Assembly: GCA_002269645.1 (NCBI GenBank)
Contig: NIVC01000637.1
Span: forward strand, 101,866 to 165,865
DNA length: 64,000 nucleotides
Source: Macrostomum lignano
Lineage: Eukaryota
Direction: 5' to 3'
In this document: piece after piece, positions 2,950 to 50,819 of the stretch
Layout: every line of letters starts with the position of its first letter
How positions within the stretch are numbered: position 1 is the first letter of the stretch
The notes under the pieces: generated by a model
What the model was told of the DNA's origin: nothing
Seen by the model: only the letters and a program-made list of their open reading frames with translations
Databases searched by the model: none
Made by a program: the position numbers and the translations under genes

Positions 2950-3340
2950 GCCTGCCCTCAGCCTGCCCTCAGCCTGCCCTCAGCCTGTCCTCAGCCTGCC
3001 TCAGCCTGTCCTCAGCCTGTCCTCAGCCTGCTCTCAGCCTGCCCTCAGCCTGTCCTCAGCCGGCCCTCAGCCTGCCCTCAGCCCGCCTCAGCCTGTCCTC
3101 AGCCTGCCCTCAGCCTGCCCTCAGCCCGCCTCAGCCTGCCCTCAGCCTGCCCTCAGCCTGTCCTCAGCCGGCCCTCAGCCTGCCCTCAGCCCGCCTCAGC
3201 CTGTCATCAGCCTGCCCTCAGCCTGCCCTCAGCCTGTCCTCAGCCTGCCCTCAGCCCGCCTCAGCCTGCCCTCAGCCTGCCCTCAGCCTGTCCTCAGCCG
3301 GCCCTCAGCCTGCCCTCAGCCTGTCCTCAGCCGGCCCTCA
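2950..3340. repeat. 11-bp repeat (CCTCAGCCTGC/T)n
   Basis: Direct reading; the overlapping ORFs are artefacts. Confidence 0.93.
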
Positions 3341-3679
3341 AAGTGAAAGTTTTCAATCTCTTTCTGAACGATACAACAGCGAATTACCTGCTGTCTGAAA
3401 TAAACAAAAGCATATTTATATCAAATAAGTCTTAAAAGTCCTCTCGCAGTTTCTGTAAAATTTTGTCGGCTTTTCATTTTATTTGACTTGCAACTTTCGG
3501 TCCTCAGCAGTGCTCTCATGCAGCTGGAATGCCAGGCTGACCATGCAAACATTTCCCGAGTGGAAAGCTTATAAAATGATAAATGTACACATTTTAGTCA
3601 CGATAAAATTATTTCACGATAATAATTTTAATTATTTTAATTATTTCACGATTTATTCACGATAAAATTTTTTCACGAT

Positions 3680-3822
3680 TATCAGAGAATCATCAGAGAA
3701 TCATCAAAGAATCATCAGAGAGTCATCAGAACATCATCAGAGAATCATCAGAGAATCATAAAAGAATCATCAAAGAATCATCAGAGAGTCATCAGAAAAT
3801 CATCAGAGAATCATCAGAGAAT
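3680..3822. repeat. 11-bp repeat (AGAGAATCATC)n
   Basis: Direct reading. Confidence 0.9.
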
Positions 3823-4609
3823 CTAACATTAAAATCACGAATCTTAAAGTTCATGCAGCATTTGAATGCTAAACCCACACACAGGCAGTCATAGGAGATC
3901 TTTCGTTCCCTTCCTGCAGATTCTGTGGCTGGGAACAGCAAAAAGTGACTGGGATGCCAAACACGTCAATTCTCCTCCTCTTGGGCCTCGCAATGAGGAT
4001 CAGAGCGAAACACCGGCCAGCTTCCCAGCTGCTCTGCATTCATGCAGGTGTGCTGGAGAGCATTTTCGTCCCCTCCTCAATTCTTCCTCCCGTTGCCGGG
4101 GCAACGATCACAGACAATGTGAAACCGCTCGCTTCGCTTCTTGGGCTGTTGGCGCCACTCTCGACTGTGGCAGCACAGCAGGCAGAGTTGACAGGGAGAA
4201 GCTCTTTGAATTGTTGCCTTTCTGTTGACTGACTCACGGCGCTACGGCTCCGCAGTCAGGCCGGGGCTCTGAATGGGAGCTGCTGGTTAGTTGGCATGCT
4301 CTGTGCGCCTAAGCAACCATGCAGCAGACTTAAACAATGGTGTGTTAAGGAGGAGGCTGAGAAGACACTTGAATGAAGATGAGCAGAAAACATATTTAGC
4401 AAAGAAACCTTCCGAACTCTGTAAAAAAGCGAGACAAATTTAAAGCATTTTGCAAAGCAGAAAGGCAGCGCAGCAAGACAAGGCTTTCCAACATGGCAGG
4501 TGCAAACCTCTCTGTTTCTGGTCGGAAAACGCAGGTGAGTCGGAGATTTTCGATTCGGGTCTGATGCTACAATTTTCTTGGTTGGACTAATTATGCTTAT
4601 CGATTGAAA

Positions 4610-5000
4610 CACTGTGACTGAGGGTCTCAGCTCACCCATGCACACTGTGACTGAGAGCCTCAGCTCACCCATGCACACTGTGACTGAGGGTCTCAGCTCA
4701 CCCATGCACACTGTGACTGAGGGTCTCAGCTCACCCATGCACACTGTGACTGACGGTCTCAGCTCACCCATGCACACTGTGACTGAGTGCCTCAGCTCAC
4801 CCATGCACACTGTGACTGAGTGCCTCAGCTCACCCATGCACACTGTGACTGAGGGTCTCAGCTCCTTCATGCACACTGTGACTGAGGGTCATAGCTCACC
4901 AATGCACACTGTGACTGAGGGTCTCAGCTCACCCATGCACACTGTGACTGAGTGCCTCAGCTCACCAATGCACACTGTGACTGAGGGTCTCAGCTTACCC
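4610..5000. repeat. 33-bp minisatellite (CACACTGTGACTGAGGGTCTCAGCTCACCCATG)n, about 12 copies
   Basis: Direct reading; gives the TVTEGLSSPMH artefact ORF. Confidence 0.95.
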
Positions 5001-5031
5001 ATAGCAACTCCACATATTGCTGACATTTCAG

Positions 5032-6894
5032 GTTGCCCAAACGCGAGCCGAGCTGGTGAAGGCGCTGGCCGCGGTCAGCTACTGCCTGCTGCTGCCGCTG
5101 CTGCTGCTTCTGCCAGTTTTTGAGGCTGATGCGGCGCAGCACCGCAGCTCAGTATCGACCTTTCTGCCCAGAAATCCGGCCGCCTCCTGCTCCGACGGCA
5201 GGTTTTGGGACGCACTGTCCCGCTGTTCCATGAGATGCGCTGTGGAGGCTCGCTGCCGCGGAATTCGCCTCGCTGATAACGGCGGAAGCGGCGGCGTCTG
5301 CGCCCTGCTGAGCAGCGAGCTGGAGGTCAACGCGAGTGCGAGTGCCGCCAGCGCGACCGACTGCACGGGCGACCGGGTGTTTGAAATGAAATGGAAGATT
5401 GGCAAGTTGCAGTGCGGGGAAGCTTCATTCGATTCAATGAATTTTACGAAGATAAATTAGGTATGTTATGAGATTATTAGGTCATTAGGTTTTTGTACAG
5501 AACAACCGTATGTGGATAGACTGATCCTCTGAGCTCAAAGTAAACAAATAAACTAACACACAGCCCACACACTCAAACAGGGCTCCACGGACTCTTCTTC
5601 TTTAAGTGTTAAAGCACGGATAGCTGAAGCAGAAGGATGCTAGACTCGATTTTCTTAGAAACGAGATGCGAACTCGTAGAGGCCAGAAAGGAATTTATAT
5701 TTGTCGCATTGCTGCACCGTTCTACCGGTTTATTTTGACCATTGTCTGGCACTTGTTTGCATTTTTATGACCGCTGATTATTTATCCAAAGTCACATCAA
5801 ACAAACAAAAATCAGTAAGAACCCCCTCATTCCCCACGACTCCAGAGAATCAATAAGAACACACCACACCTTAGCAATGTTGAATAACAAGCAACAAGAT
5901 TAGCAATGTTGACAGAGGCAGAATCATTGTGAGTCTAAGTATAAGTCTCAAGACACGGAAATTGTATATCAGTAAAAAGCTTAATGGTTAACAGCAAGCT
6001 GGCAAGGGAACTGCCAGACGAAACACCACGGGGCGCTTGAAGTTCTGCGAGTCGATTTGTTCAACGGAGGATGTCACAATCTGTAAATATAATTGAAGAG
6101 TTCGAATCGATACCCGGGGCCGGCCAGCTCACAGTGACTGAATAGAAAGAAGTGTCGCGAGTTTTTCGATGCGAATTTGGTCAAAATAGGCGACAAAACG
6201 GCGTAGCGCTGCAGAGAACGCATAGCGCTGAATTGGTTTTTGCCATAGACAAATCCGGTCGAGAAAAATCCGTGTTGCTCGAGAGCATGCTGAAGGCACT
6301 GGCGTTGCGACAAACATTCGTTCCTTACCGGCTCTTCGGCTCATTTCTAAGAAAATCCAGTGTGGGGTCCATATGTTAGAGCTTTCAAAGCTTAAACCCT
6401 AAATTATCGCCTGACATTTCTACGCAGGAGCAGGACTGTTCTAAATTGAAGTCTTCAGGTAGTTAATACTCGCTCAATCGAACAAAAACATTCCAGAGCA
6501 GCTGCAGCTGTCAGGATGTAGCGAGTCAAGCACACTTGAAGGCAACTGCAACAACGCCATTGACGGAAGCCTGGACCAAAACCACAACGCCGGGGCCGTC
6601 TGCACCCATACCCAGGCAACAGTGGGCAACGAGTGGTGGCAGGCCTCCATGGCCTCCAGGGCCTTCGTCAGTCTGGTGCGCATCTACAACCGGCAGGACG
6701 GCAACGAGGGCAGACTGAATAACTTCGCGATCTCCGTGGACGGCCTGCAGTGCGCCAGCTACAACTCCACCCAGGCATTCAGCATCAAGGACTTTCCTTG
6801 CGAGCAGGTTGGCACGACTCTCAAGGTCACGCAGCGCTTCAGTAATGAGTTCCTCACCCTGTGCGAAGTCATCGTCTTCGGACGGCTGCTGTGA
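5032..6894 (+). CDS. Secreted PAN/apple-like + F-type lectin protein (paralog 2); exons 5032-5401 and 6497-6894
   Basis: Exon A: hydrophobic signal (LLLPLLLLLPVFEADA) and C..RC..E..CRGI...CALL...DC pattern. Phase-1 donor G|GCAAGT at the same position as the GT donor of paralog 3. Acceptor TTCCAG|AG at 6496. The lectin exon is closely similar to 1741-2141. Start codon unresolved (GTG at 5056). Confidence 0.75.
5645..6360. mobile_element. MITE-like element with imperfect inverted ends, inside the lectin intron
   Basis: CTCGATTTTCTTAGAAACGAG (5645) vs reverse complement of 6340-6360 CTGGATTTTCTTAGAAATGAG (19/21). Further inverted TTTGTCGCA and ATTTTGACC blocks inside. No TSD found. Confidence 0.5.
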
Positions 6895-7400: not shown

Positions 7401-8516
7401 TGGTTGAGGCGTGAAGTTTTTACAAGCTCTTTTCTAGAAATTTAGGCCGACAGCAGGGGCCGTAGCCCAGTTGTCTAGCACGGCGCTCTTGTGTGCCAGC
7501 GGCCCAGGCTTGGGTCTGTTAGTGTGATTAACGCCCTTGGCACAAGGTTACATGCCTAACGGTGAATTAAGTGAGGGCCGCTGTGCACTCCTGTGTGAGT
7601 AGTGTGTGCCTGTGTGTGCATGACTGCGCAGTGCGCACGCATCCGAGCGCTTGTGTGCCTGCTCAGGGGAGTCAGCGGAATGACAATTTCGCTAAAAGTG
7701 CGCCAGGGTGCACACAGCCCCTCTGCCTCTAATAAAAAGTTAGCCAGACAGTTGGAAATGTTTGTTTACAAAGAATTGATTGACGCAAACAGCAGCAATA
7801 GCCACTTAATTGATTCTGTCGGTCATGTTTGGCTCGGTGTATTTTCTCTAATGGCTGCATTGTCTTGAGAGCCTCTGCGGACTAGTGGGAGGCAGCAGCA
7901 GCACTCAAGTGGGGCAGGCAAAAACCGAGGCTGGCGGGTCTCCTATGCCGTGCGATGTCGGTAATTTTGCTAATTTTCCCTGCCAACTGACCTACCAAAT
8001 CCACGCACTCCGATTGTTATTGATTGGGTCCGGGAATAGCGACAAAAAAGTGGGCACCTGCAGAAATAGACAGGTAGCAGAGACGATAGTATAAAATCAC
8101 CCACAGTGCTTCAGTGAATGCCAAATAATTGGCAGTTGCGCCCCGCAGCTGCAGTTTCTTTTCATTACAGCAGCCTATTTCTGTATATTCGGCATCTGCT
8201 GAGTCGAGTCTGCATGCTGGTAAGCCCGCAGTTTTCTAGCAGGGACAGCTAAAGCAGAATAGCAGACCTCTCAAATCGTACAAACTTCGCAGCAAAATGC
8301 ATTGGCAATATAGGAAGTATTTTCAGTTTATTTAGCACAAATTTTCCTATACCTCCCTTCTGCACTTCAGAATACCAAAATGAAGCAATTTCCAATGTTT
8401 GCATGAAATTTCACGGAATTTGCATCATCTGCACCATAGTAGACTCGAACTGACGCAGGCTGAACGACTCATCCCTGTACAACTCGTAATTTTAGGCTGC
8501 CAAACCGACTTCAACA

Positions 8517-9433
8517 ATGACGGTGTCGATGCCGCTGATCGCTGTATTCTGCTGCAGCTGTCTGCTGCTTGCAGTCCGCGGCGCTGAGGCTCTGCAGCCG
8601 TGCAGCTCGCGACTGATTTTCGAGCCGAGAAACCCGGCCACCGCCTGCTCGGGCGGCAGATTCAAAACTGCGCTCTCCGCGTGCGCCTGGAGATGCACAC
8701 TGGAGCCCCTGTGCCGCGGCATCCGCCTTGTTGACGACGGCAGCTGCGCCCTGCTAGGCAGCGAGCAGGAAGTCAGCGCGGCTGCATTGGCCGCCTCCGC
8801 GACTGACTGCAGCGGCGATCGGCTGTTTGCCTGGCGGTCAGGTGAGAAAGCTTAGTCTGAAGGAAGCTGACATGCTAAATTATGACAGAATTTTTTTGGC
8901 CATGCAGTTACCTGGAAAATAACTTTGAGTCTGAGGACTAATATTGCAATCCCGTATCCTCGAGGCTCTGAATTTAGGCTTCATATAAATATCCTCCATA
9001 AAAACATTCTGCAGAGCAGCTGCAGCTGAGCGGCTGCAGCCAGTCCAGCACCAGCTACAACGGCATCTGCGAACGCGTCACAGACGGCGGCACGGCACAG
9101 ACCTACTCGGCCGGGAGCTGCGGTCACACAGACAACTTGGCCAACACCAAACAGTGGTGGCAGGCGGCCGCGGCCTCCAAGGCCTTCATTAGCCTGGTGC
9201 GCATCTACAACCGGCAGGACTGCTGCGCCAACAGGCTGACGAACTTCACCATCGCCCTGGACGGCCAGCAGTGCGCCAGCTACAACTCCGGCCAGACATT
9301 CAGCGTGAAAGACTTCGCCTGCGATAAAGTCGGCAGCAACCTCAGGGTGACGCAGCGAACCGAGGGCGAGTACCTCACACTGTGCGAGGTCGTCGCCTTC
9401 GGCCGCCAGCTTCCAGCGTCTGGTCAGGAGTAG
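8517..9433 (+). CDS. Secreted PAN/apple-like + F-type lectin protein (paralog 3), 247 aa; exons 8517-8841 and 9015-9433
   Basis: ATG at 8517, signal peptide (LIAVFCCSCLLLAVRGAEA), PAN-like Cys pattern. Donor G|GTGAG (8841) and acceptor TCTGCAG|AG (9014), both phase 1. Lectin motif GHT...RIYNRQDCCANR. Confidence 0.9.
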
Positions 9434-10179
9434 CGACGGGATTATTGTTGATCAGCATTGTACTTTAATCACCCTGTCTCTTCACCCGCTCTTTCTCCTC
9501 TGCTGGCAACTCAGCCACAGTCAACAATTGCATAGGCCAGATGGTTTTCAATCACTTGGCTGCCAGTGCAAGCGAGACTGGCTGACTGAGCTCTGTGTGG
9601 AAATTTCGAGTGTTCCTGTGCCTGCATTTACTTCAGCTCATTGCCTTAAATGCGATGGGAAAAATCTTGCGCTGCAGCCCCCCCCCCCCGAGTCCACATT
9701 CTGTGGCGTTTCCAGTCCCATTCTGTATCTTTTGCAGTAAGAAGTTTGGAAAAATGAAAAATGAAAATAGAAAATGAAATTGTTTCTGATTTCAACTCAA
9801 AATTTAATCAATTTGTCTTCAACGCTAATGAAACAACTCAAGCAATTATTTTATCAAGAAGAAAATCGGAGTTCCAAAAGACTGAATATTGAACGATCAA
9901 GAGCAAATTAAAGCATTTGCAAGTATGAGTTGCAAATCACCGAGAAGCTGCGGTGCATGTACTCGGATCCTTAGCCAAGTTAAAATTCCTTATTGTCAAC
10001 CCTATATGTCAACTTCATTACGTAAGCCAGGAGGCTGCAATATTAGACACTGCATTATCATCTCAACAAGAAGACTGCCAGTTCTTCCCAGTCCGACGAA
10101 TGTACCGAGCAACCAGGCGATTTTTTTGAATGAAGTGGCATGCGAACGAGTCGGTCAGTCAAGTAGCCGTAAAAGCCAC

Positions 10180-13100
10180 CTAACCGAATTCCGCAACAAC
10201 ACTGCGGCAAACTCCCACAATGGGAGAATAATTTCTCGCATCGCCGTAGTTGAAAGGCCGGGCGACTTCCACAATCTGCCAGATACTGCGGTCCTTCTTC
10301 AGCAGGCAGACGATAAGGCCGCGGTAGCCACAGAATCGGCTGAAGTTCAAGGTGCTCTCGGACAGACTCTGGGTAGGCCGGGCGCTGTCGTAGAACTCGA
10401 GCGTCGGCATCCGGAAGCCCTGCATGCTGGACCGACGCCAGGCGCTCATCAGGAACAGCAGGTGAGTCACTGGCTGGCCTCGCACCACCAGATTGTCCAG
10501 GTTCTGCACCCACACCTGACGGGCAAGGTGTGACATGCGATTGCAATCAATAACAAGTAGAATTGGAACGACCATTCTTCTATAGTCTAGTTTGTAGTTG
10601 TTTATAAATCCGGCCGAATCAGCCCGTCACAGCCTGTCAGAGTGTCGAAATGACATTTTTATACCCAAGATGCTAGTTTATCAGTACAGTACAATCGGAG
10701 TTTCTCTTAAAAAGAGGGCCGTCAAGATGCGACAAGTTGTCGGTAGGTGACTTTGAGTGACCTTGAACCTTACGCATAAAGACAAACTCACATTGAATGT
10801 CGATGTGCTACGCTGCCTAAGAATGTCCCTGGTTGCATTGCCGCAGTGCTGGATATAGTTGGCATAACACGTGTACCTATACGCCTGCTGCGGCCAGGTG
10901 GAGCGGAAGTCTATATTGTCTAGGTGAATGATGTGGTCTCCCACTTTGGAGAAGGTGATGCAGGCCGTATCCAGGTAATTCTTTGGATTGTTTTCCGGCC
11001 AGCCCCAGGACATGGAGAAGCGAATCTTGTTCAGGTCGCTGGGCACTTCGTACAGCACGCGGATGGCTCTGAGGCCGGTGCAGCCGCTGGCGATGCCCAG
11101 ATCAGCGAGTGTCCGGTGGTCTCCCTGCGGTTGGTGCAGCAGTGGGACAAAGAAATTGATGAAATAAGACCGTTAGAAGAATGGTGGACTGTCAAGCCCA
11201 GGGCTGGGGTGCAGGGAGGAGAACAGATGCACTGGTGAGGTGCAGGGAGGAGAACAGATGCACTCGTGAGGTGCAGGGAGGGGAACAAATGCACTGGTGA
11301 GGTGCAGGGAGGGGAACAGATGCACTGGTGAGGTGCAGAGGGGAACAGATGCACTGGTGAGGTGCAGAGGGGAACAGATGCACTGGTGAGGTGCAGGGGG
11401 GAACAGATGCACTGGTGAGGTGCAGAGGGGAACAAATGCACTGGTGAGGTGCAGAGGGGAACAGATGCACTGGTGAGGTGCAGAGGGGAACAAATGCACT
11501 GGTGAGGTGCAGGGGGAACAGATGCACTGGTGAGGTGCAGAGGGGAACAAATGCACTGGTGAGGTGCAGAGGGGAACAGATGCACTGGTGAGGTGCAGAG
11601 GGGAACAAATGCACTGGTGAGGTGCAGAGGGGAACAGATGCACTGGTGAGGTGCAGAGGGGAACAAATGCACTGGTGAGGTGCAGAGGGGAACAGATGCA
11701 CTGGTGAGGTGCAGAGGGGAACAGATGCACTGGTGAGGTGCAGAGGGGAACAGATGCACTGGTGAGGTGCAGAGGGGAACAGATGCGCTGGTGAGGTGCA
11801 GAGATCACTGGTGAGATGTGCACAGGCTGAAGCAGTGAATGCTCACCTCGAGTGATGTCCCGCCCATGAGGATTTTGATCTCGCGCACCGGCGGCCTGTC
11901 ATCCATTTTCTGCTGCAATTTCAGCTTGAAGGCATTGAGGGAGTCCAGACTCTGGGCGCTGATGATGGCCGTGTCGCCTGACATGAAGCTGACGGACAGG
12001 TTGAGCGGGATTGAAACCAGCTGCGATACTGCAACCTGCGGCTGGGACACTGTGGGTGGGAAACGCAGCAAGCTGGAGACAGTCTTGCGCTCTGAAGGAC
12101 TGCAAAAGTAAACCGAATATTGATACCTCAGCATCAATATCCCATCTCTGATACCTCAGCATCAATATCCCATCTCTGATACCTCAGCATCAAAATCCCA
12201 TCCCTGATACCTCAGCATCAATATCCCATCTCTGATACCTCAGCATCAATATCCCATCCCTGATACCTCAGCATCAATATCCCATCCCTGATACCTCAGC
12301 ATCAGTATCCCATCCCTGATACCTCAGCATCAATATCCCATCCCTGATACCTCAGCATCAATATCCCATCTCTGATACCTCAGCATCAAAATCCCATCCC
12401 TGATACCTCAGCATCAATATCCCATCTCTGATACCTCAGCATCAATATCCCATCCCTGATACCTCAGCATCAATATCCCATCCCTGATACCTCAGCATCA
12501 ATATCCCATCTCTGATACCTCAGCATCAAAATCCCATCCCTGATACCTCAGCATCAGTATCACATCCCTGATACCTCAGCATCAATATCCCATCCCTGAT
12601 ACCTCAGCATCAATATCCCATCCCTGATACCTCAGCATCAATATCCCATCCCTGATACCTCAGCATCAATATCCCATCCCTGATACCTCAGCATCAATAT
12701 CCCATCCCTGATACCTCAGCATCAATATCCCATCCCTGATACCAGGTACCTCAGCATCAATATCCCATCCCTGATACCTCAGCATCAATATCCCATCCCT
12801 GATACCTCAGCATCAATATCCCATCTCTGATACCTCAGCATCAAAATCCCATCCCTGATACCTCAGCATCAATATCCCATCCCTGATACCTCAGCATCGA
12901 TATCCCATCCCTGATACCTCAGCATCAATATCCCATCCCTGATACCTCAGCATCAATATCCCATCCCTGATACCTCAGCATCCATATCCCATCCTTGATA
13001 CTCCAGCATCAGTATCCCATCCCTGATACCTCAGCTTCAATATCCCATCCCTGATACCTCAGCATCAATATCCCATCCCTGATACCTTAGCATCAATATC

Positions 13101-13745
13101 CCATCGCTGATAACTCAGCATCAATATCCCATCCCTGATACTCCAGCATCAATATCCCATCCTTGATACTCCAGCATCAATATCCCATCCTTGATACTCC
13201 AGCATCAATATCCCATCCCTGATACTCCAGCACCAATATCCCATCCCTGATACCTCAGCATCGATATCCCATCCCTGATACTTTGGTCTGAGACTCCAGT
13301 GGTATTTAACGAAACTCCAACCTCATTGCAGAGTCCTTCAGCATCCACACTGCATCAGCTTACCGGACACCTCCTTGTCCCTGTAGTCATAGACAACGCT
13401 CTCCAGTTGCAGTCTGTAGATGGCGGCGCTCTCTGAGTCCGGCTCCACCTCGCCATCGCACTGGCTGTATGGGCAGACACCTTCCGAGTCCACAGACTTC
13501 AAGCAGCACTATGGAAATTGTGCACCAACAGTTCATATTTAGATACTCGTACAGGCATGCAAGTTTAAATGAATAATCATTTTCATTTAGTCAAAATTCA
13601 AACCCGAATGCAGATCTGCAGCAGCGGATGGTGACATGCGTCAGTCAGTGGCTCCAGTGGATATTCATTTGATGGTTTGTCAATGCAGCAGCTGCTGCAC
13701 TTCATTGTCCAATTTGCATGCATTAGAATGCCATTTTGTCACTGG
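10180..13745 (-). CDS. RING finger + ubiquitin-like + TerD-like domain protein; exons 13745-13604, 13508-13364, 12091-11847, 11124-10792, 10515-10180
   Basis: All junctions are GT-AG with matching phase. RING: CSSC...CHH...CIRC...CPYSQC. UBL: LNLSVSFMSGDTAIISAQSLDSLNAFKLKLQQK...IKILMGGTSLEGDHRTLADLGI. TerD-like: KIRFSMSWGW...YLDTAC...IQHCGN...VTHLLFLMSAW...LIVCLLKK...WQIV...GDARNY. In-frame TGA at 13741-13739; next ATG at 13723 (392 aa). Confidence 0.8.
11210..11810. repeat. 29-bp intronic minisatellite (GCACTGGTGAGGTGCAGAGGGGAACAGAT)n, about 20 copies
   Basis: Direct reading. Confidence 0.95.
12118..13280. repeat. 28-bp intronic minisatellite (GATACCTCAGCATCAATATCCCATCCCT)n, about 41 copies
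   Basis: Direct reading. Confidence 0.96.
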
Positions 13746-14541
13746 CTAAACTTATTCAAAAACCAAAACTTGTATTTACTATTTAAAAAGTAGCTTTCAA
13801 AACATTGTTGCATCAATAGAATTTGATTAATAAGCATGCTTTGATATACATATAATAATTTTTTTTAAACTGTCATGAGAGAGTTATGAGTCCTAGGTCC
13901 TAGATAGAAGATGCAAGACTCTTAGACATTTTGGTGGCTATAGGAAAATTTTAGCATATATTTATTATGCCTTTGCTAAGTATTTTTTAAAATAAATATG
14001 TGATCTTTTACAAGGGGAAAAGTAAATTTAACCTTTGATATTCCTTAGATAAGTCCTTAATACTAAATAGATATTAAATAATAATATTATTACAATGCCA
14101 CAAAAGCAACTATACTTTTTTCTTTTCTTATTATATTAATATTGATTTTTAGAATAAATTTATTTAGTATATTAGCTATTTATCTGTGTGATATCTATTC
14201 AATATGATTTGATATCATTTAATTCTTTGGTTTAAAACCAATGTTTAATATATTTATACAGTTAATTCTATATGATAGACTAGAAAAAAATTATGCATGT
14301 TTTAAGAAATAATATATACAAATGCAGAAACTATCAGTTTATTATATTAATTTTAACTTCTACTAGCATTTTTATTTGGACACTAGTGTCCAACTATAGT
14401 TATAGATATAGAAACATATTAAATAAAAAACGAAATAAATGATTTGATTTTTTATCTATAACTAATTAAAATTTAATTCATAAAAAGTAAAAAGCCTGAA
14501 AAACCACATTTAGTGCAAACAAGAAAAAGAAAGATTAAGTA

Positions 14542-19081: not shown

Positions 19082-21446
19082 TCCAGCTTGTTCGTCCACA
19101 CCGGAGGCACATAGCAGAAATTCTTGTAGCTATCGGGGCACCTCCTGTGCTTGGAGCTCAGCCCTGCAAGTTGTGTTTGAGACTGACTGACTGACTGACT
19201 GACTGACTGACTGACTGACTGACTGACTGACTGACTGACTGACTGACTGACTGACTGACTGACTGACTGACTGACTGACTGACTGACTGACTGACTGACT
19301 GACTGACTGACTGACTGACTGACTGACTGACTGACTGACTGACTGACTGACTGACTGACTGACTGACTGACTGACTGACTGACTGACTGACTGACTGACT
19401 GACTGACTGACTGACTGACTGACTGACTGACTGACTGACTGACTGACTGACTGACTGACTGACTGACTGACTGACTGACTGACTGACTGACTGACTGACT
19501 GACTGACTGACTGACTGACTGACTGACTGACTGACTGACTGACTGACTGACTGACTGACTGACTGACTGACTGACTGACTGACTGACTGACTGACTGACT
19601 GACTGACTGACTGACTGACTGACTGACTGACTGAATTGAGTGAGTGGGTGACTGACTGACTGACTGACTGACTTGAGTGAGTGGGTGACTGACTGACTGA
19701 CTGACTGACTGACTGACTGACTGACTGACTGACTGACTGACTGACTGACTGACTGACTGACTGACTGACTGACTGACTGACTGAATTGAGTGAGTGGGTG
19801 ACTGACTGACTGACTGACTGACTTGAGTGAGTGGGTGACTGACTGACTGACTGACTGACTGACTGACTGACTGACTGACTGACTGACTGACTGACTGACT
19901 GACTGACTGACTGACTGACTGACTGACTGACTGACTGACTGACTGACTGACTGACTGACTGACTGACTGACTGACTGACTGACTGACTGACTGACTGACT
20001 GACTGACTGACTGACTGACTGACTGACTGACTGACTGACTGACTGACTGACTGACTGACTGACTGACTGACTGACTGACTGACTGACTGACTGACTGACT
20101 GACTGACTGACTGACTGACTGACTGACTGACTGACTGACTGACTGACTGACTGACTGACTGACTGACTGACTGACTGACTGACTGACTGACTGACTGACT
20201 GACTGACTGACTGACTGACTGACTGACTGACTGACTGACTGACTGACTGACTGACTGACTGACTGACTGACTGACTTACTAAAGAAGGCCGCGTAGTCTT
20301 TGTACGCGCTGACGGCGATCATCAGGCAGTTCTCGAACTGCTTGGCGCCCAACTCCTCGTGGTCCATCAGAGCCTCGCTGACGTTGCGCAGCAGGGTTCG
20401 CGACGGGACGTTCACGCAGAGGGGCTCGCTGGTTCCGCTCATGTCTATGATTAGGAACAGCTGAGAGTTGTGCCGGTTGAAGGGAAAGAAGAACCTGTAC
20501 ACCTGACTGTACATGATGGACAAGTAAAACTTGTGCTTGAAGTCCCACATAAAGTCGCTCGCTCGTGGTAGTGGAATAGTCACCTGAACCCTATAGGGCA
20601 TATTATGGGCAAGTCGTTGTGGGTAAATATGCGGCCTGCTACTCGAAAACTTCCTGTATTGCTGATTCCCTCACGGCTACTATGAAAAGTAACTCACTTC
20701 AAAACCACATTATTCGCAGCTGTCTCAACTCTACAGACACCTCACTCCAGAGCCACCTTACTCCGCAGCCACCTCACTCCAGAGCCAACTCTCTCTACAG
20801 CCACCTCACTCCACAGCTACCTCACTCCACAACCACCTCACTCCACAACCACCTCACTCCACAGCCACCTCACTCCACAGCCACCTCACTTCACAGCTAC
20901 CTCACTCCACAACCACCTCACTCCGCAGCCACCTCACTCCACAGCCACCTCACTTCACAGCTACCTCACTCCACAACCACCTCACTCCGCAGCCACCTCA
21001 CTCCACAGCCACCTCACTTCACAGCTACCTCACTCCACAACCACCTCACTCCACAACCACCTCACTCCACAGCCACCTCACTTCACAGCTACCTCACTCA
21101 CCGCTATCTCAACTCCAAAGCCACCTTACTCTGCAGCCAACCTTAGCACATATACTTACTCAAACGGATAGAAGAGTGTGTCGGAGCTGACAAACTTCCT
21201 AAGGTTGACCCGGGCCAGTCGGACATCCGTGTTCAGCCTCACCAGGGGGCCCAAGTTGGGGAAGTTCGGCATCGTGTGCACATTGTAGCCGCTGATGAAC
21301 AGATCATACTGATGGTCGGCTGACGAGGAGACGGTCTGGGATTGGCTTATGAACTGGGTACTCGGCTGCTTCAGCTGCATTTGCATCTGCTGAGCAAGTA
21401 GGGATGGTTTCTCCTCCTGAGGTGCTGTGTCGCTATCGATCTCCAT
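19082..21446 (-). CDS. Upstream exons (21446-21160, 20590-20280, 19163-19082) of unknown function, probably the 5' part of the RING-UBL-TerD locus
   Basis: ATG at 21446; junctions GA|GTAAGT to TATAG|G, A|GTAAGT to TTGCAG|GG, and GA|GTGAGC are all phase-consistent; GC3-rich codons. No family recognised. Confidence 0.7.
19187..20277. repeat. (GACT)n microsatellite, about 1.1 kb, filling an intron
   Basis: Direct reading; an interruption block is duplicated at about 19634-19687 and 19783-19836. Confidence 0.98.
20740..21100. repeat. 16-bp intronic repeat (CACCTCACTCCACAGC)n
   Basis: Direct reading. Confidence 0.93.
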
Positions 21447-29274: not shown

Positions 29275-31027
29275 ACGGGTGATCCAAAAAAATGGACAAA
29301 CTTTGTAGTGAAACTGTGCCAAGGCAATACAGTGAATCTTTACAGGCTTGCAGCAGGTGAATCCTGACACCTGTAAGATTTTTTCTGCCAACTTTGGAAT
29401 GGATATCTTTATCCAGTTACCTAAAATAGCCATTCTAAATTTAGCCAACAGTCACTTTCAACTTGAAGCCATAGACAGTAGATGTGTAATTGTAGGAATG
29501 ACCACATGACAACCAACATACAAGAAGATCTTTAAGGTCAGATTTATTGAAACAATGAAGCAATGAAACAATGAAATAATTTAAAACAAAGGAACAATAA
29601 AATTTTGTCTTCATCCTTTCCCCAGTCATCTATGTCGCAGCTATCGACCATCGGCTTCAACACACTCCTGCAGACGAGGCAGAAACGCGTCAACAGCATT
29701 ATGCACTGCTTGCATGCTGTTTGTTCTAATGGCATTGAAAGCAGCAACAATTGCTTGGTTCAACATGGCAATGTTCAGGAAGCCTCCGTTTGCAAAACGC
29801 AGTCTTTCACAAAGCCCCACAGAAAATAGTCCACAGGATTGAGATCAGGAGACCTTGAGGGCCACGGCATGTCAAAAAGCCTACCAATTATTCTGTTGTG
29901 TCCAAATGTATCATGCAGAAATGCCCGCGTGGCCAAAGCAGTGTGAGCTGGGGCTCATCCTGCATAAACCAGATGTTACCTGGTTCAATGTGCATTGCCT
30001 CGAGATCTGGCAGAAGAAAATGCTCAAGCACATCTCGGTATGCTGCAGCTGATATTTTGCCAGGAAAAAAATAAGGACCTCCGAGCCAATCTTGAGACAT
30101 TGCTGCAAGCATATGTGTCTGCTGGGCATTCTGGTGCAGACCTGCTGGAGGAATGTCTGGCTGCAAACTGCAAACGGCCCAGTATCTGTCATTCCAAAGA
30201 TTGACTGTTCCGTCAGTACAGAATGCGGCCTCATCAACAAAAAGGATAAATGGAGCACCATTCTCAAACGTTTGCAGCATGTTGGTGCACAGTTCTGTGC
30301 GTTGTACAAAATTGGGCTCCGTCAGTCCATGTTTCACTTCTGTTCGGTACAGGTACATGTGCAAGTCCAGTTTGGCAATCTGTTGGGTCGAAGTGTATGA
30401 GAGCCCAGTACTTGCAGCCACCTGTCTTAATGACGTGCGAGATTCGTCCAGTTCTTGTAGAACTTCCAGAATTCTCTCCTCAGTGCGAGCACTTCTGGGA
30501 CGTCCACTGTTTCTTTATGTGCCTGCTTGACTGTCTTCTTGTCAGTGAACTTCTTAATCAGTTTGCTCACATTGCTTGCAGAGCAGAGCAGAATTTCGAC
30601 AGCATTTTCCTGTTTATTTCTCCAGAAGTTGAACCTCCAAGCTGCTGATCTTACACTACTGCCATTTGCGTAGTAAAATTGCAGAATTCTCACTTGATCT
30701 TCCTCAGTGAATTTGCTGGCCATCTCGATAAAGCACAATTCTGCCACTGGCAGTGAATTAATTTTCATCCTGTCTTTGGCTTTAAGTTGAAAGTGTCTTT
30801 GGTTGTTTCTGCAATTACACATCTACTGTCTATGGCTTCAAGTTGAAAGTGACTGTTGGCTAAATTTACAATGGCTATTTTAGGAAACTGGATAAAGATA
30901 TCCATTCCAAAGTTGGCAGAAAAAATCTTATAGGTGTCAGGATTCACCTGCTGTGAGCCTGTAAAGATTCACTGTATTGCCTTGGCACAGTTTCATTACA
31001 AAGTTTGTCCATTTTTTGGATCACCCA
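29275..31027 (-). mobile_element. Tc1/mariner superfamily transposon (DD41D/rosa-like), about 217-bp TIRs, TA TSD, disrupted transposase at about 29650-30730
   Basis: Long TIRs (GGGTGATCCAAAAAATGGACAAAC...) flanked by TA. Minus strand reads FVDEAAF..G.VN..N.RYW...GPYFF...WFMQDG(frameshift)APAHT...WPSRSPDLNPVDYFLWGFVKD. Confidence 0.92.

Positions 31028-40442: not shown

Positions 40443-44979
<4,537 letters not shown>

Positions 44980-50387: not shown

Positions 50388-50819
<432 letters not shown>

Follow-up and report, generated by a model that had tools for sequence, protein, structure and literature searches.

Does an animal gene join a bacterial-type stress domain to two modules of ubiquitin signalling, and if so, is the fusion a recent import or an old possession of eukaryotes? 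The question is raised by a gene on the minus strand of a 64-kb window (the whole stretch analysed, positions 101,866 to 165,865 of contig NIVC01000637.1) from the flatworm Macrostomum lignano. A first-pass annotation of this DNA had proposed that five phase-matched exons encode a RING finger, a ubiquitin-like domain (UBL) and a C-terminal domain resembling TerD, which is among the least understood of the widespread bacterial domains for stress and phage resistance. We find that the gene is no singular fusion but one divergent member of a eukaryotic family that already stands, uncharacterised, in the databases, and that it is old, vertically inherited and constrained, not a recent horizontal acquisition.

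The gene was read on the reverse complement of positions 10100-13800, where its five exons span 13705/13723–10180. All four introns have canonical GT..AG ends, in phases 0, 1, 0 and 0, and the joined exons form an uninterrupted coding sequence of 1179 nt closed by a TAG stop at 10182-10180. The predicted protein has 372–392 aa, depending on the choice of ATG and of exon-3 acceptor. The exons and the repeats between them are as follows, with a slash marking an exon boundary and C1 to C8 (H4 being the fourth) the zinc ligands in order.

13604..13705, minus strand: exon 1, with the coding start at ATG 13705 and a second in-frame ATG upstream at 13723; first half of the RING finger (C1, C2, loop 1 DKPSNEYP, C3, H4, C5), ending ...ICIR/gt in phase 0.

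13364..13508, minus strand: exon 2, second half of the RING finger (C6, C7-P, C8; CCLKSVDSEGVCPYSQC), then a helix; donor G/GTAAGC, phase 1.

12121..13281, no strand given: 28-bp minisatellite, ~41 copies, occupying most of intron 2.

11847..12091, minus strand: exon 3, a disordered linker followed by the UBL's N-terminal two thirds (...LNLSVSFMSGDTAIIS...ILMGGTSLE/), ending in phase 0.

11216..11803, no strand given: 29-bp minisatellite, ~20 copies, within intron 3.

10792..11124, minus strand: exon 4, the closing strands of the UBL (GDHRTLADLGI...LRAIRVLYEV, as far as ~11047) and, from ~11028, the N-terminal half of TerD, with the motifs SMSWGWP, NYLDTAC and HCGNATRD.

10180..10515, minus strand: exon 5, the C-terminal half of TerD (VTHLLFLMSAW, GLIVCLLKKDRSIWQIVEV, GDARNYSPIV), a C-terminal helix and the TAG stop.

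Because introns 2 and 3 are largely minisatellite, a track of open reading frames (ORFs) displays the gene only as fragments. The strings on which the five-exon proposal had been built (CSSC, CHH, CIRC, CPYSQC, MGGTSLE/GDHRTLADLGI, SWGW, YLDTAC, HCGN, VTHLLFLMSAW, LIVCLL and WQIV) are all present on the minus strand at the coordinates given for them, CIRC being rebuilt across intron 1. The five-exon structure was confirmed by the canonical sites, their phases, the intact coding sequence and an existing gene model: except for the exon-3 acceptor, the spliced protein is the NCBI entry 'hypothetical protein BOX15_Mlig027339g2, partial [Macrostomum lignano]' (P0001). The NCBI and UniProt models choose a second in-frame acceptor at 12049, 42 nt (14 codons) downstream of 12091, and the difference amounts to 14 residues of disordered linker, for which the predicted local distance difference test (pLDDT) of our AlphaFold2 model falls below 50. 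By tblastn, each exon was recovered from the window at 99-100% identity, and no second copy of the gene was found within the 64 kb.

Junction 1 restores the family-invariant C5-x-x-C6 of the zinc finger, and an intron-less homolog contig from a public run (L001, 1120 bp, encoding a 73% identical protein) is continuous across junctions 3/4 and 4/5. Since homologs uniformly begin M-x-C-x-x-C, translation likely starts at ATG 13705 (MKCSSC...) rather than at 13723. The ratio of nonsynonymous to synonymous substitution (dN/dS) between the window coding sequence and L001 was 0.155 over 278 codons, indicating that the gene is under purifying selection. It is an intact, single-copy gene of M. lignano and is predicted to be expressed.

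A search for the same architecture in other eukaryotes, which the first-pass annotation had suggested, found it from amphioxus to glomeromycetes and protists. Exhaustive HMMER comparison of the Macrostomum C-terminal domain profile with 1.84 billion representatives yielded 213 relatives at E<=1e-3. As a word-indexed protein search with the 34-sequence family alignment gave only 4 proteins, taxa were named from exact cluster look-ups of 30 representatives, a sample and not a census. RING-UBL-TerD proteins occur in Branchiostoma, Patiria, Gigantopelta, Ruditapes, Haliotis, Stylophora, Xenia, Rhizophagus, Diversispora and Ambispora, that is, in amphioxus, a sea star, gastropods, bivalves, a stony and a soft coral and three glomeromycete fungi, and also in protist transcriptomes. 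Their labels read 'uncharacterized' or 'ubiquitin-like domain-containing' throughout; one family member (P0097) already bears precomputed PF00240 and PF02342 assignments. No paper on a RING-UBL-TerD protein was found in the literature searched, the key comparative Ter-system study (Anantharaman, Iyer and Aravind 2012), which may discuss eukaryotic TerD fusions and is likely to list this architecture, lying outside that search.

The order of the family is fixed: RING, short helical linker, integral UBL, TerD. Its RING is recognisable by M-x-C-x2-C-x3-KLSxEFP...C-x-H-x4-C-x2-C...CP-x(2,4)-C, and its TerD by F-D-L-x-W-G-x-P, DYLDxSC, HSGD, VTHLFFxLSAW, SQAVIMC and GNAxxYxPI. The window protein shares domain order, a length of ~330-390 aa, the eight RING ligands, the UBL and the TerD signatures W-G-x-P, YLD-x-x-C, VTHLxF and a W near the C-terminal hairpin with the uncharacterised proteins of Branchiostoma floridae (LOC118414582, XP_035674620.1), Patiria miniata (LOC119723498, XP_038050107.1), Gigantopelta aegis (LOC121378819) and Rhizophagus clarus (RclHR1_02740004). 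It differs from them in that the Macrostomum clade forms the divergent end of the family, at 22-28% identity, and has lost the Pfam TerD match. In this clade HSGD is changed to HCGN, preceded by an extra loop and followed by an insertion; loop 1 has KPSNEYP in place of KLSxEFP, and the H4-C5 spacing is x5.

Profiles and a predicted structure together indicate that the C-terminal domain is a divergent TerD beta-sandwich. Pfam TerD matched 137 of the 144 scanned relatives (best E 8.4e-22), and hhalign matched the Macrostomum domain over its full length to the other family members (99.9%, E 1.3e-35, 181 columns). The family profile, in turn, matches solved TerD structures (3IBZ, E 1.6e-12; 2KXT, E 4.8e-12; hhalign 97.8%). 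We built an AlphaFold2 model from the 34-sequence family alignment (mean pLDDT 90.2, predicted template-modelling score 0.73), and its top Foldseek matches in the PDB, at probability 1.0 and template-modelling (TM) scores of 0.63-0.69, were the TerD-family structures 2QNG and 2QZ7 and also 9a6r_B, a chain labelled SCP2 that we take to be a Bacillus TerD-like stress protein. Among viral folds, the top matches were TerD-like proteins of phages. The predicted fold is that of bacterial TerD, TerE and TerZ (Klebsiella TerD, 2KXT/2KXV; Streptomyces 3IBZ, 2QZ7, 2QNG), with collinear strands and motifs: GLGWD corresponds to SWGWP, DLDAS to YLDTA, HTGDN to HCGN, IIFVV to LLFLM and GEWKF to SIWQI. Bacterial TerD, however, is a stand-alone protein of ~190 aa encoded in ter operons, with an intact Ca-binding block, GDNxTGEGxGDDE, whereas in the window protein it forms the C-terminal end of a RING-UBL chain and has lost the Ca block.

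Several results weigh against this assignment. Pfam TerD (PF02342) was absent, even at E<=10, from the window protein and the Macrostomum paralogs, the Macrostomum C-terminal profile found no TerD in the PDB, and direct hhalign comparison of the Macrostomum clade with two bacterial TerD sequences failed (probability 1.2%). Because the window protein has no direct TerD sequence match, its membership is a transitive link combined with a predicted structure. The TerD call of the first-pass annotation is notable in this respect, the domain being invisible in the window protein to Pfam and to direct profile comparison. On profile and structure, the UBL and TerD calls were right: Foldseek matches both domains and the family profile matches TerD, even if the window protein itself stays below Pfam cut-offs.

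Two candidates from these searches were set aside. The only PDB match of the Macrostomum C-terminal profile, to 6VBK 'Lon211' (38 residues, E 0.036), was uninformative, being marginal and confined to the last hairpin, and PI3K chains retrieved by Foldseek (probability 0.8-0.97) proved to be a composite artefact of RBD plus C2, with a root-mean-square deviation (rmsd) of ~25 Å and TM 0.18.

The middle domain is ubiquitin-like. With the window protein alone as query, Pfam (E<=10) and phmmer against the PDB returned ubiquitin only, and Pfam ubiquitin (PF00240) aligned with residues 122-186 at 21.5 bits, below its cut-off of 25.4. Two Macrostomum paralogs exceed that cut-off (P0003, 28.3 bits; P0004, 35.1 bits), and the model matched 68/144 relatives. 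In the AlphaFold2 model, this domain has a beta-grasp fold that superposes on many ubiquitin chains with TM 0.84-0.89 and rmsd 1.3-1.6 Å over ~77-80 columns, which bears out the proposal of a UBL split across an intron. The UBL is internal, has no Gly-Gly end, and its last strand, LRAIRVLYEV, continues straight into the TerD domain, so it is an integral domain and not a conjugatable modifier.

The N-terminal domain, judged by its sequence, is a RING-type C3HC4 finger with atypical features, and its catalytic role is predicted. The eight Zn ligands of the window protein (C3, C6, C24, H26, C32, C35, C46 and C51, in the order C-C-C-H-C-C-C-C) are invariant in 32/32 aligned relatives, and a Pro follows C7 in 25 of these. 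The first loop carries K-L-S-x-E-F-P, a family-specific motif shared among the 32, of which DKPSNEYP in exon 1 is the local version. Against the PDB, the family profile of this region gave significant matches solely to RING proteins, namely RNF4 (4e-4, single domain), BRCA1 (5e-4), BMI1, RNF8, RAD18, COP1 and PCGF5. Modelled in isolation, the N-terminal part reached a pLDDT of 91.6, and in the AlphaFold2 model the exon 2 part forms helices at residues 32-42 and 59-69. No IBR or RING2 signal appeared in Pfam scans or the model, and the protein has one zinc finger only.

We consider it somewhat probable, from these sequence features and the model, that the protein is a single-chain RING-type ubiquitin ligase, or a ligase subunit, with a TerD recognition module; ligase (E3) function with TerD as sensor or substrate module, as the first-pass annotation had proposed, is plausible by analogy with known RING and UBL-containing ligases. 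In such a protein the C3HC4 finger would recruit the ubiquitin-charged E2 (E2~Ub), and TerD would act as a recognition or sensor module choosing a partner, either a protein or a small ligand. The UBL, which is modelled in a fixed orientation and directly continuous with the first TerD strand, could offer a surface resembling ubiquitin, to which the proteasome or partners that bind ubiquitin would dock; alternatively, it might regulate the RING in cis, in the fashion of Parkin-type E3s. Parkin and HOIL-1L, of the RBR class, likewise hold an integral, non-conjugatable UBL in one chain with a RING-type finger, and RBR RING1 resembles the finger described here in its final Zn pair, C-P-x(2-4)-C, and in having no basic linchpin. 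The RBR ligase ARIH1 was the best, though non-significant, structural match of the N-terminal domain, and we treat the resemblance to RING1 as a lead only. In contrast with RBR ligases, there is no IBR and no catalytic RING2, the order is RING then UBL, and a TerD domain closes the chain.

The main rival to a ligase is an adaptor. The finger could be a non-catalytic, RING-like zinc module, comparable to those of BARD1, BMI1 and MAT1, in a protein that acts as an adaptor or scaffold through its UBL and TerD and is ligase-inactive, or active only as a heterodimer. We hold this to be unlikely. Several features speak for it or against the catalytic prediction. Relative to the canonical spacing (C-x2-C-x(9-39)-C-x(1-3)-H-x(2-3)-C-x2-C-x(4-48)-C-x2-C), the H4-C5 interval is x5 in the window protein and x4 in most relatives, not x2-3, and the C7-C8 interval is x4 (x2 or x4 in relatives), not x2. 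The hydrophobic E2-contact residue between C1 and C2, in loop 1, is unconserved in the family, and the residue after C8 is D/N/H/S instead of the activating R/K linchpin. Pfam RING models found no match in the window protein and matched only 1-2 of 144 relatives. Foldseek of the isolated N-terminal model gave no significant match (ARIH1 best, at E 0.13), with mostly RING and U-box proteins listed. BMI1, PCGF5 and MAT1, which are not autonomous E3s, are among the best profile matches, and the invariant KLSxEFP of loop 1 hints at a family-specific interaction surface. Conversely, conservation extends to all eight ligands and to the Pro that follows C7, the active E3s RNF4, RNF8, RAD18 and COP1 match the profile equally well, and some active RINGs, such as RBX1, also have a non-basic linchpin residue. 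The RING call of the first-pass annotation is therefore upheld by the invariant ligands and the profile matches, with the reservation that spacing and E2-contact residues are atypical.

A second rival concerns what TerD does. It might be a Ca2+- or nucleotide-dependent switch that gates ligase activity on a second messenger, like bacterial TerD or Dictyostelium CABP1, a reading that we regard as improbable for this protein. Published work describes Ca-binding sites in TerD (PMC10953051) and suggests that it recognises specialised nucleotide derivatives (PMC7159879). HSGD and acidic residues are retained in the wider family, and the same TerD clade also occurs fused to EF-hands (dinoflagellates) and to vWA (a bivalve). 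The first-pass annotation, however, had judged the Ca-binding segment degenerate, and the comparison agrees. Of the bacterial block HTGDNxTGEGxGDDE and the DFDLDAS that precedes it, the eukaryotic family retains only D-x-LD and HSGD-x-x-DD, and in the window protein these are degraded further, to NYLD and HCGNATRD (HCGNATRDILRQRS), the latter a degenerate counterpart of HSGD/GDNxTGEGxGDDE. Close paralogs likewise have NYLD for D-x-LD and either HCGNATRD or HDGPARKC in the HSGD...DD stretch, and GDNxTGEGxGDDE is missing from all of them. The TerD of most family members may thus still bind a cation or ligand, since HSGD and acidic residues are kept, whereas that of the Macrostomum clade, its Ca/ligand site being degenerate, is more likely a ligand-independent binding module.

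The eukaryotic TerD clade also has a near-invariant H in HSGD and near-invariant C in DYLDxSC and in SQAVIMC, the Cys positions not being Cys in bacterial TerD. These clade-specific His and Cys residues might form a putative, different metal site.

The history of the gene can be read from its introns. A Macrostomum paralog (P0004, 32% identity) also has five exons with phases 0, 1, 0 and 0, and its introns 1 and 3 share both alignment column and phase with those of the window gene. The amphioxus ortholog has phase-0 introns at the same two places, HCFR/CLIK in the RING and EVELK/TYANS in the UBL. The shared introns, the paralogs and the eukaryote-wide distribution indicate vertical descent since at least the protostome-deuterostome ancestor. 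The suggestion in the first-pass annotation that the gene is 'possibly of horizontal origin' is not supported, given its four introns, two of them shared with amphioxus, the presence of paralogs and an architecture spread across Metazoa, Glomeromycota and protists. A recent transfer of the gene, or of its TerD part alone, from bacteria is very improbable: TerD is mainly bacterial and phage-borne, but the four introns are spliceosomal, two of them are shared in position and phase with both the 32%-identical paralog and amphioxus, the named relatives of the TerD clade are all eukaryotic, no NCBIfam or PADLOC prokaryotic model matched, and the distance to bacterial TerD is too great for profiles to match directly. 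Whether the TerD domains of eukaryotes came from bacteria in the distant past is a separate matter, and such an origin is possible. Equally poor is the chance that the five-exon structure is artefactual or that the gene is a pseudogene in decay, as minisatellite-filled introns 2 and 3 in a repeat-rich region might suggest, given the intact frame, canonical splice sites, identity to independent gene models, dN/dS of 0.155 against the homolog, AlphaFold2 pLDDT of 90 and conserved intron positions.

TerD domains are found in other eukaryotic proteins. Dictyostelium CABP1 is a cAMP-binding TerD-domain protein. The trypanosomatid proteins FAZ28 and FAZ30 also contain the domain (PMC10953051). All three show the TerD fold in eukaryotic cytoplasmic proteins, in each case without RING or UBL. 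A conserved eukaryotic family that joins TerD, RING and UBL suggests that TerD is a recognition or sensor module that can be used in ubiquitin signalling. A bolder view, which we put forward tentatively and think unlikely as a whole, is that the RING-UBL-TerD family constitutes an unstudied class of ubiquitin ligases whose TerD sensor, drawn from the bacterial Ter stress and anti-phage toolkit, would bind Ca2+ or a nucleotide-like ligand, with a role in stress or innate-immune signalling in marine invertebrates, arbuscular mycorrhizal fungi and protists; on this view the copies in the flatworm would form a derived, ligand-independent offshoot. M. lignano is amenable to RNA interference and transgenesis and, together with the amphioxus and coral orthologs, this makes the family a source of tractable systems for finding the binding partner of TerD. 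The gene is in this sense a useful lead into a widespread, uncharacterised family and not a one-off oddity. For annotation, it shows that Macrostomum proteins labelled only 'hypothetical' or 'ubiquitin-like domain-containing' hold a RING and a cryptic TerD domain.

Some relatives carry further domains. A bivalve relative from Potamilus (P0015) has an added N-terminal vWA domain, and two others (P0016 and P0028) have D-x-T-x-S-M-like motifs in their C-terminal tails, from which vWA was assigned by eye alone. As bacteria, too, link TerD genes with vWA proteins (TerY/TerF), the association of TerD with vWA may be ancient. Dinoflagellate-type relatives (P0048, P0076 and P0096) combine a TerD of the same clade with EF-hands and ankyrin repeats. 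Within M. lignano, P0004 belongs to a tandem pair on contig NIVC01000109.1 (L002), at 3001-6288 and 8050-9288+, the second copy encoding 389 aa and starting ~1.8 kb downstream. Introns of the P0004 gene contain weak tblastn segments, UBL-like (3385-3576) and TerD-like (4030-4599), possibly decayed duplicate exons. The viral fold search also listed, at ranks 11 and 13, a 'Ring and ubiquitin domain protein' of the Barrevirus giant virus (A0A3G4ZQ93) and a 1248-aa protein of Tetraselmis virus 1 whose TerD-like region scored TMq 0.33 across 210 columns.

The window as a whole is rich in repeats, with some two dozen minisatellite arrays of period 10-48 bp (35 rows, several of which repeat an array), and at 19181-20280 a (GACT)n run reaches 274 copies. 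Long spurious ORFs arise from many of these repeats. The other features are listed here.

1815-2141, 6622-6894 and 9137-9433, plus strand: tandem ORFs sharing WWQA...SLVRIYNRQDCC...LTLCEV.

29888-30822, minus strand: ORFs resembling, by eye, a mariner/Tc1-type transposase remnant (DEAAF...NLWNDRYW), unconfirmed.

42241-44979, minus strand: coronin-like gene, with DUF1899 and WD40 in ORF 44443-44979 and coronin-type WD40_4 in ORF 42241-42876.

50388-50798, minus strand: intron-less histone H3 gene (Pfam Histone, E 1.3e-48).

Two of the three tandem ORFs match an F5/8-type-C / NedA-like galactose-binding domain (PF22633, E 1.6e-8 and 2.2e-5), and 6622-6894 was assigned to the same domain through its similar sequence; the group looks like a tandem cluster of lectin-like genes directly beside the 3' end of the RING-UBL-TerD gene. 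Upstream of two of these ORFs lie Cys-rich ORFs (5017-5460 and 8517-8855; CSGGRF...C..RC....C.GIRL), without a Pfam match, which may be upstream exons. Within the putative transposase remnant, ORF 29888-30421 had no Pfam match at E<=1e-3. The intervening intron of the coronin-like gene holds an array of 12/27/39-bp repeats at 43587-44351, and the histone H3, by eye, looks H3.3-like in its residues S31 and A-A-V-G.

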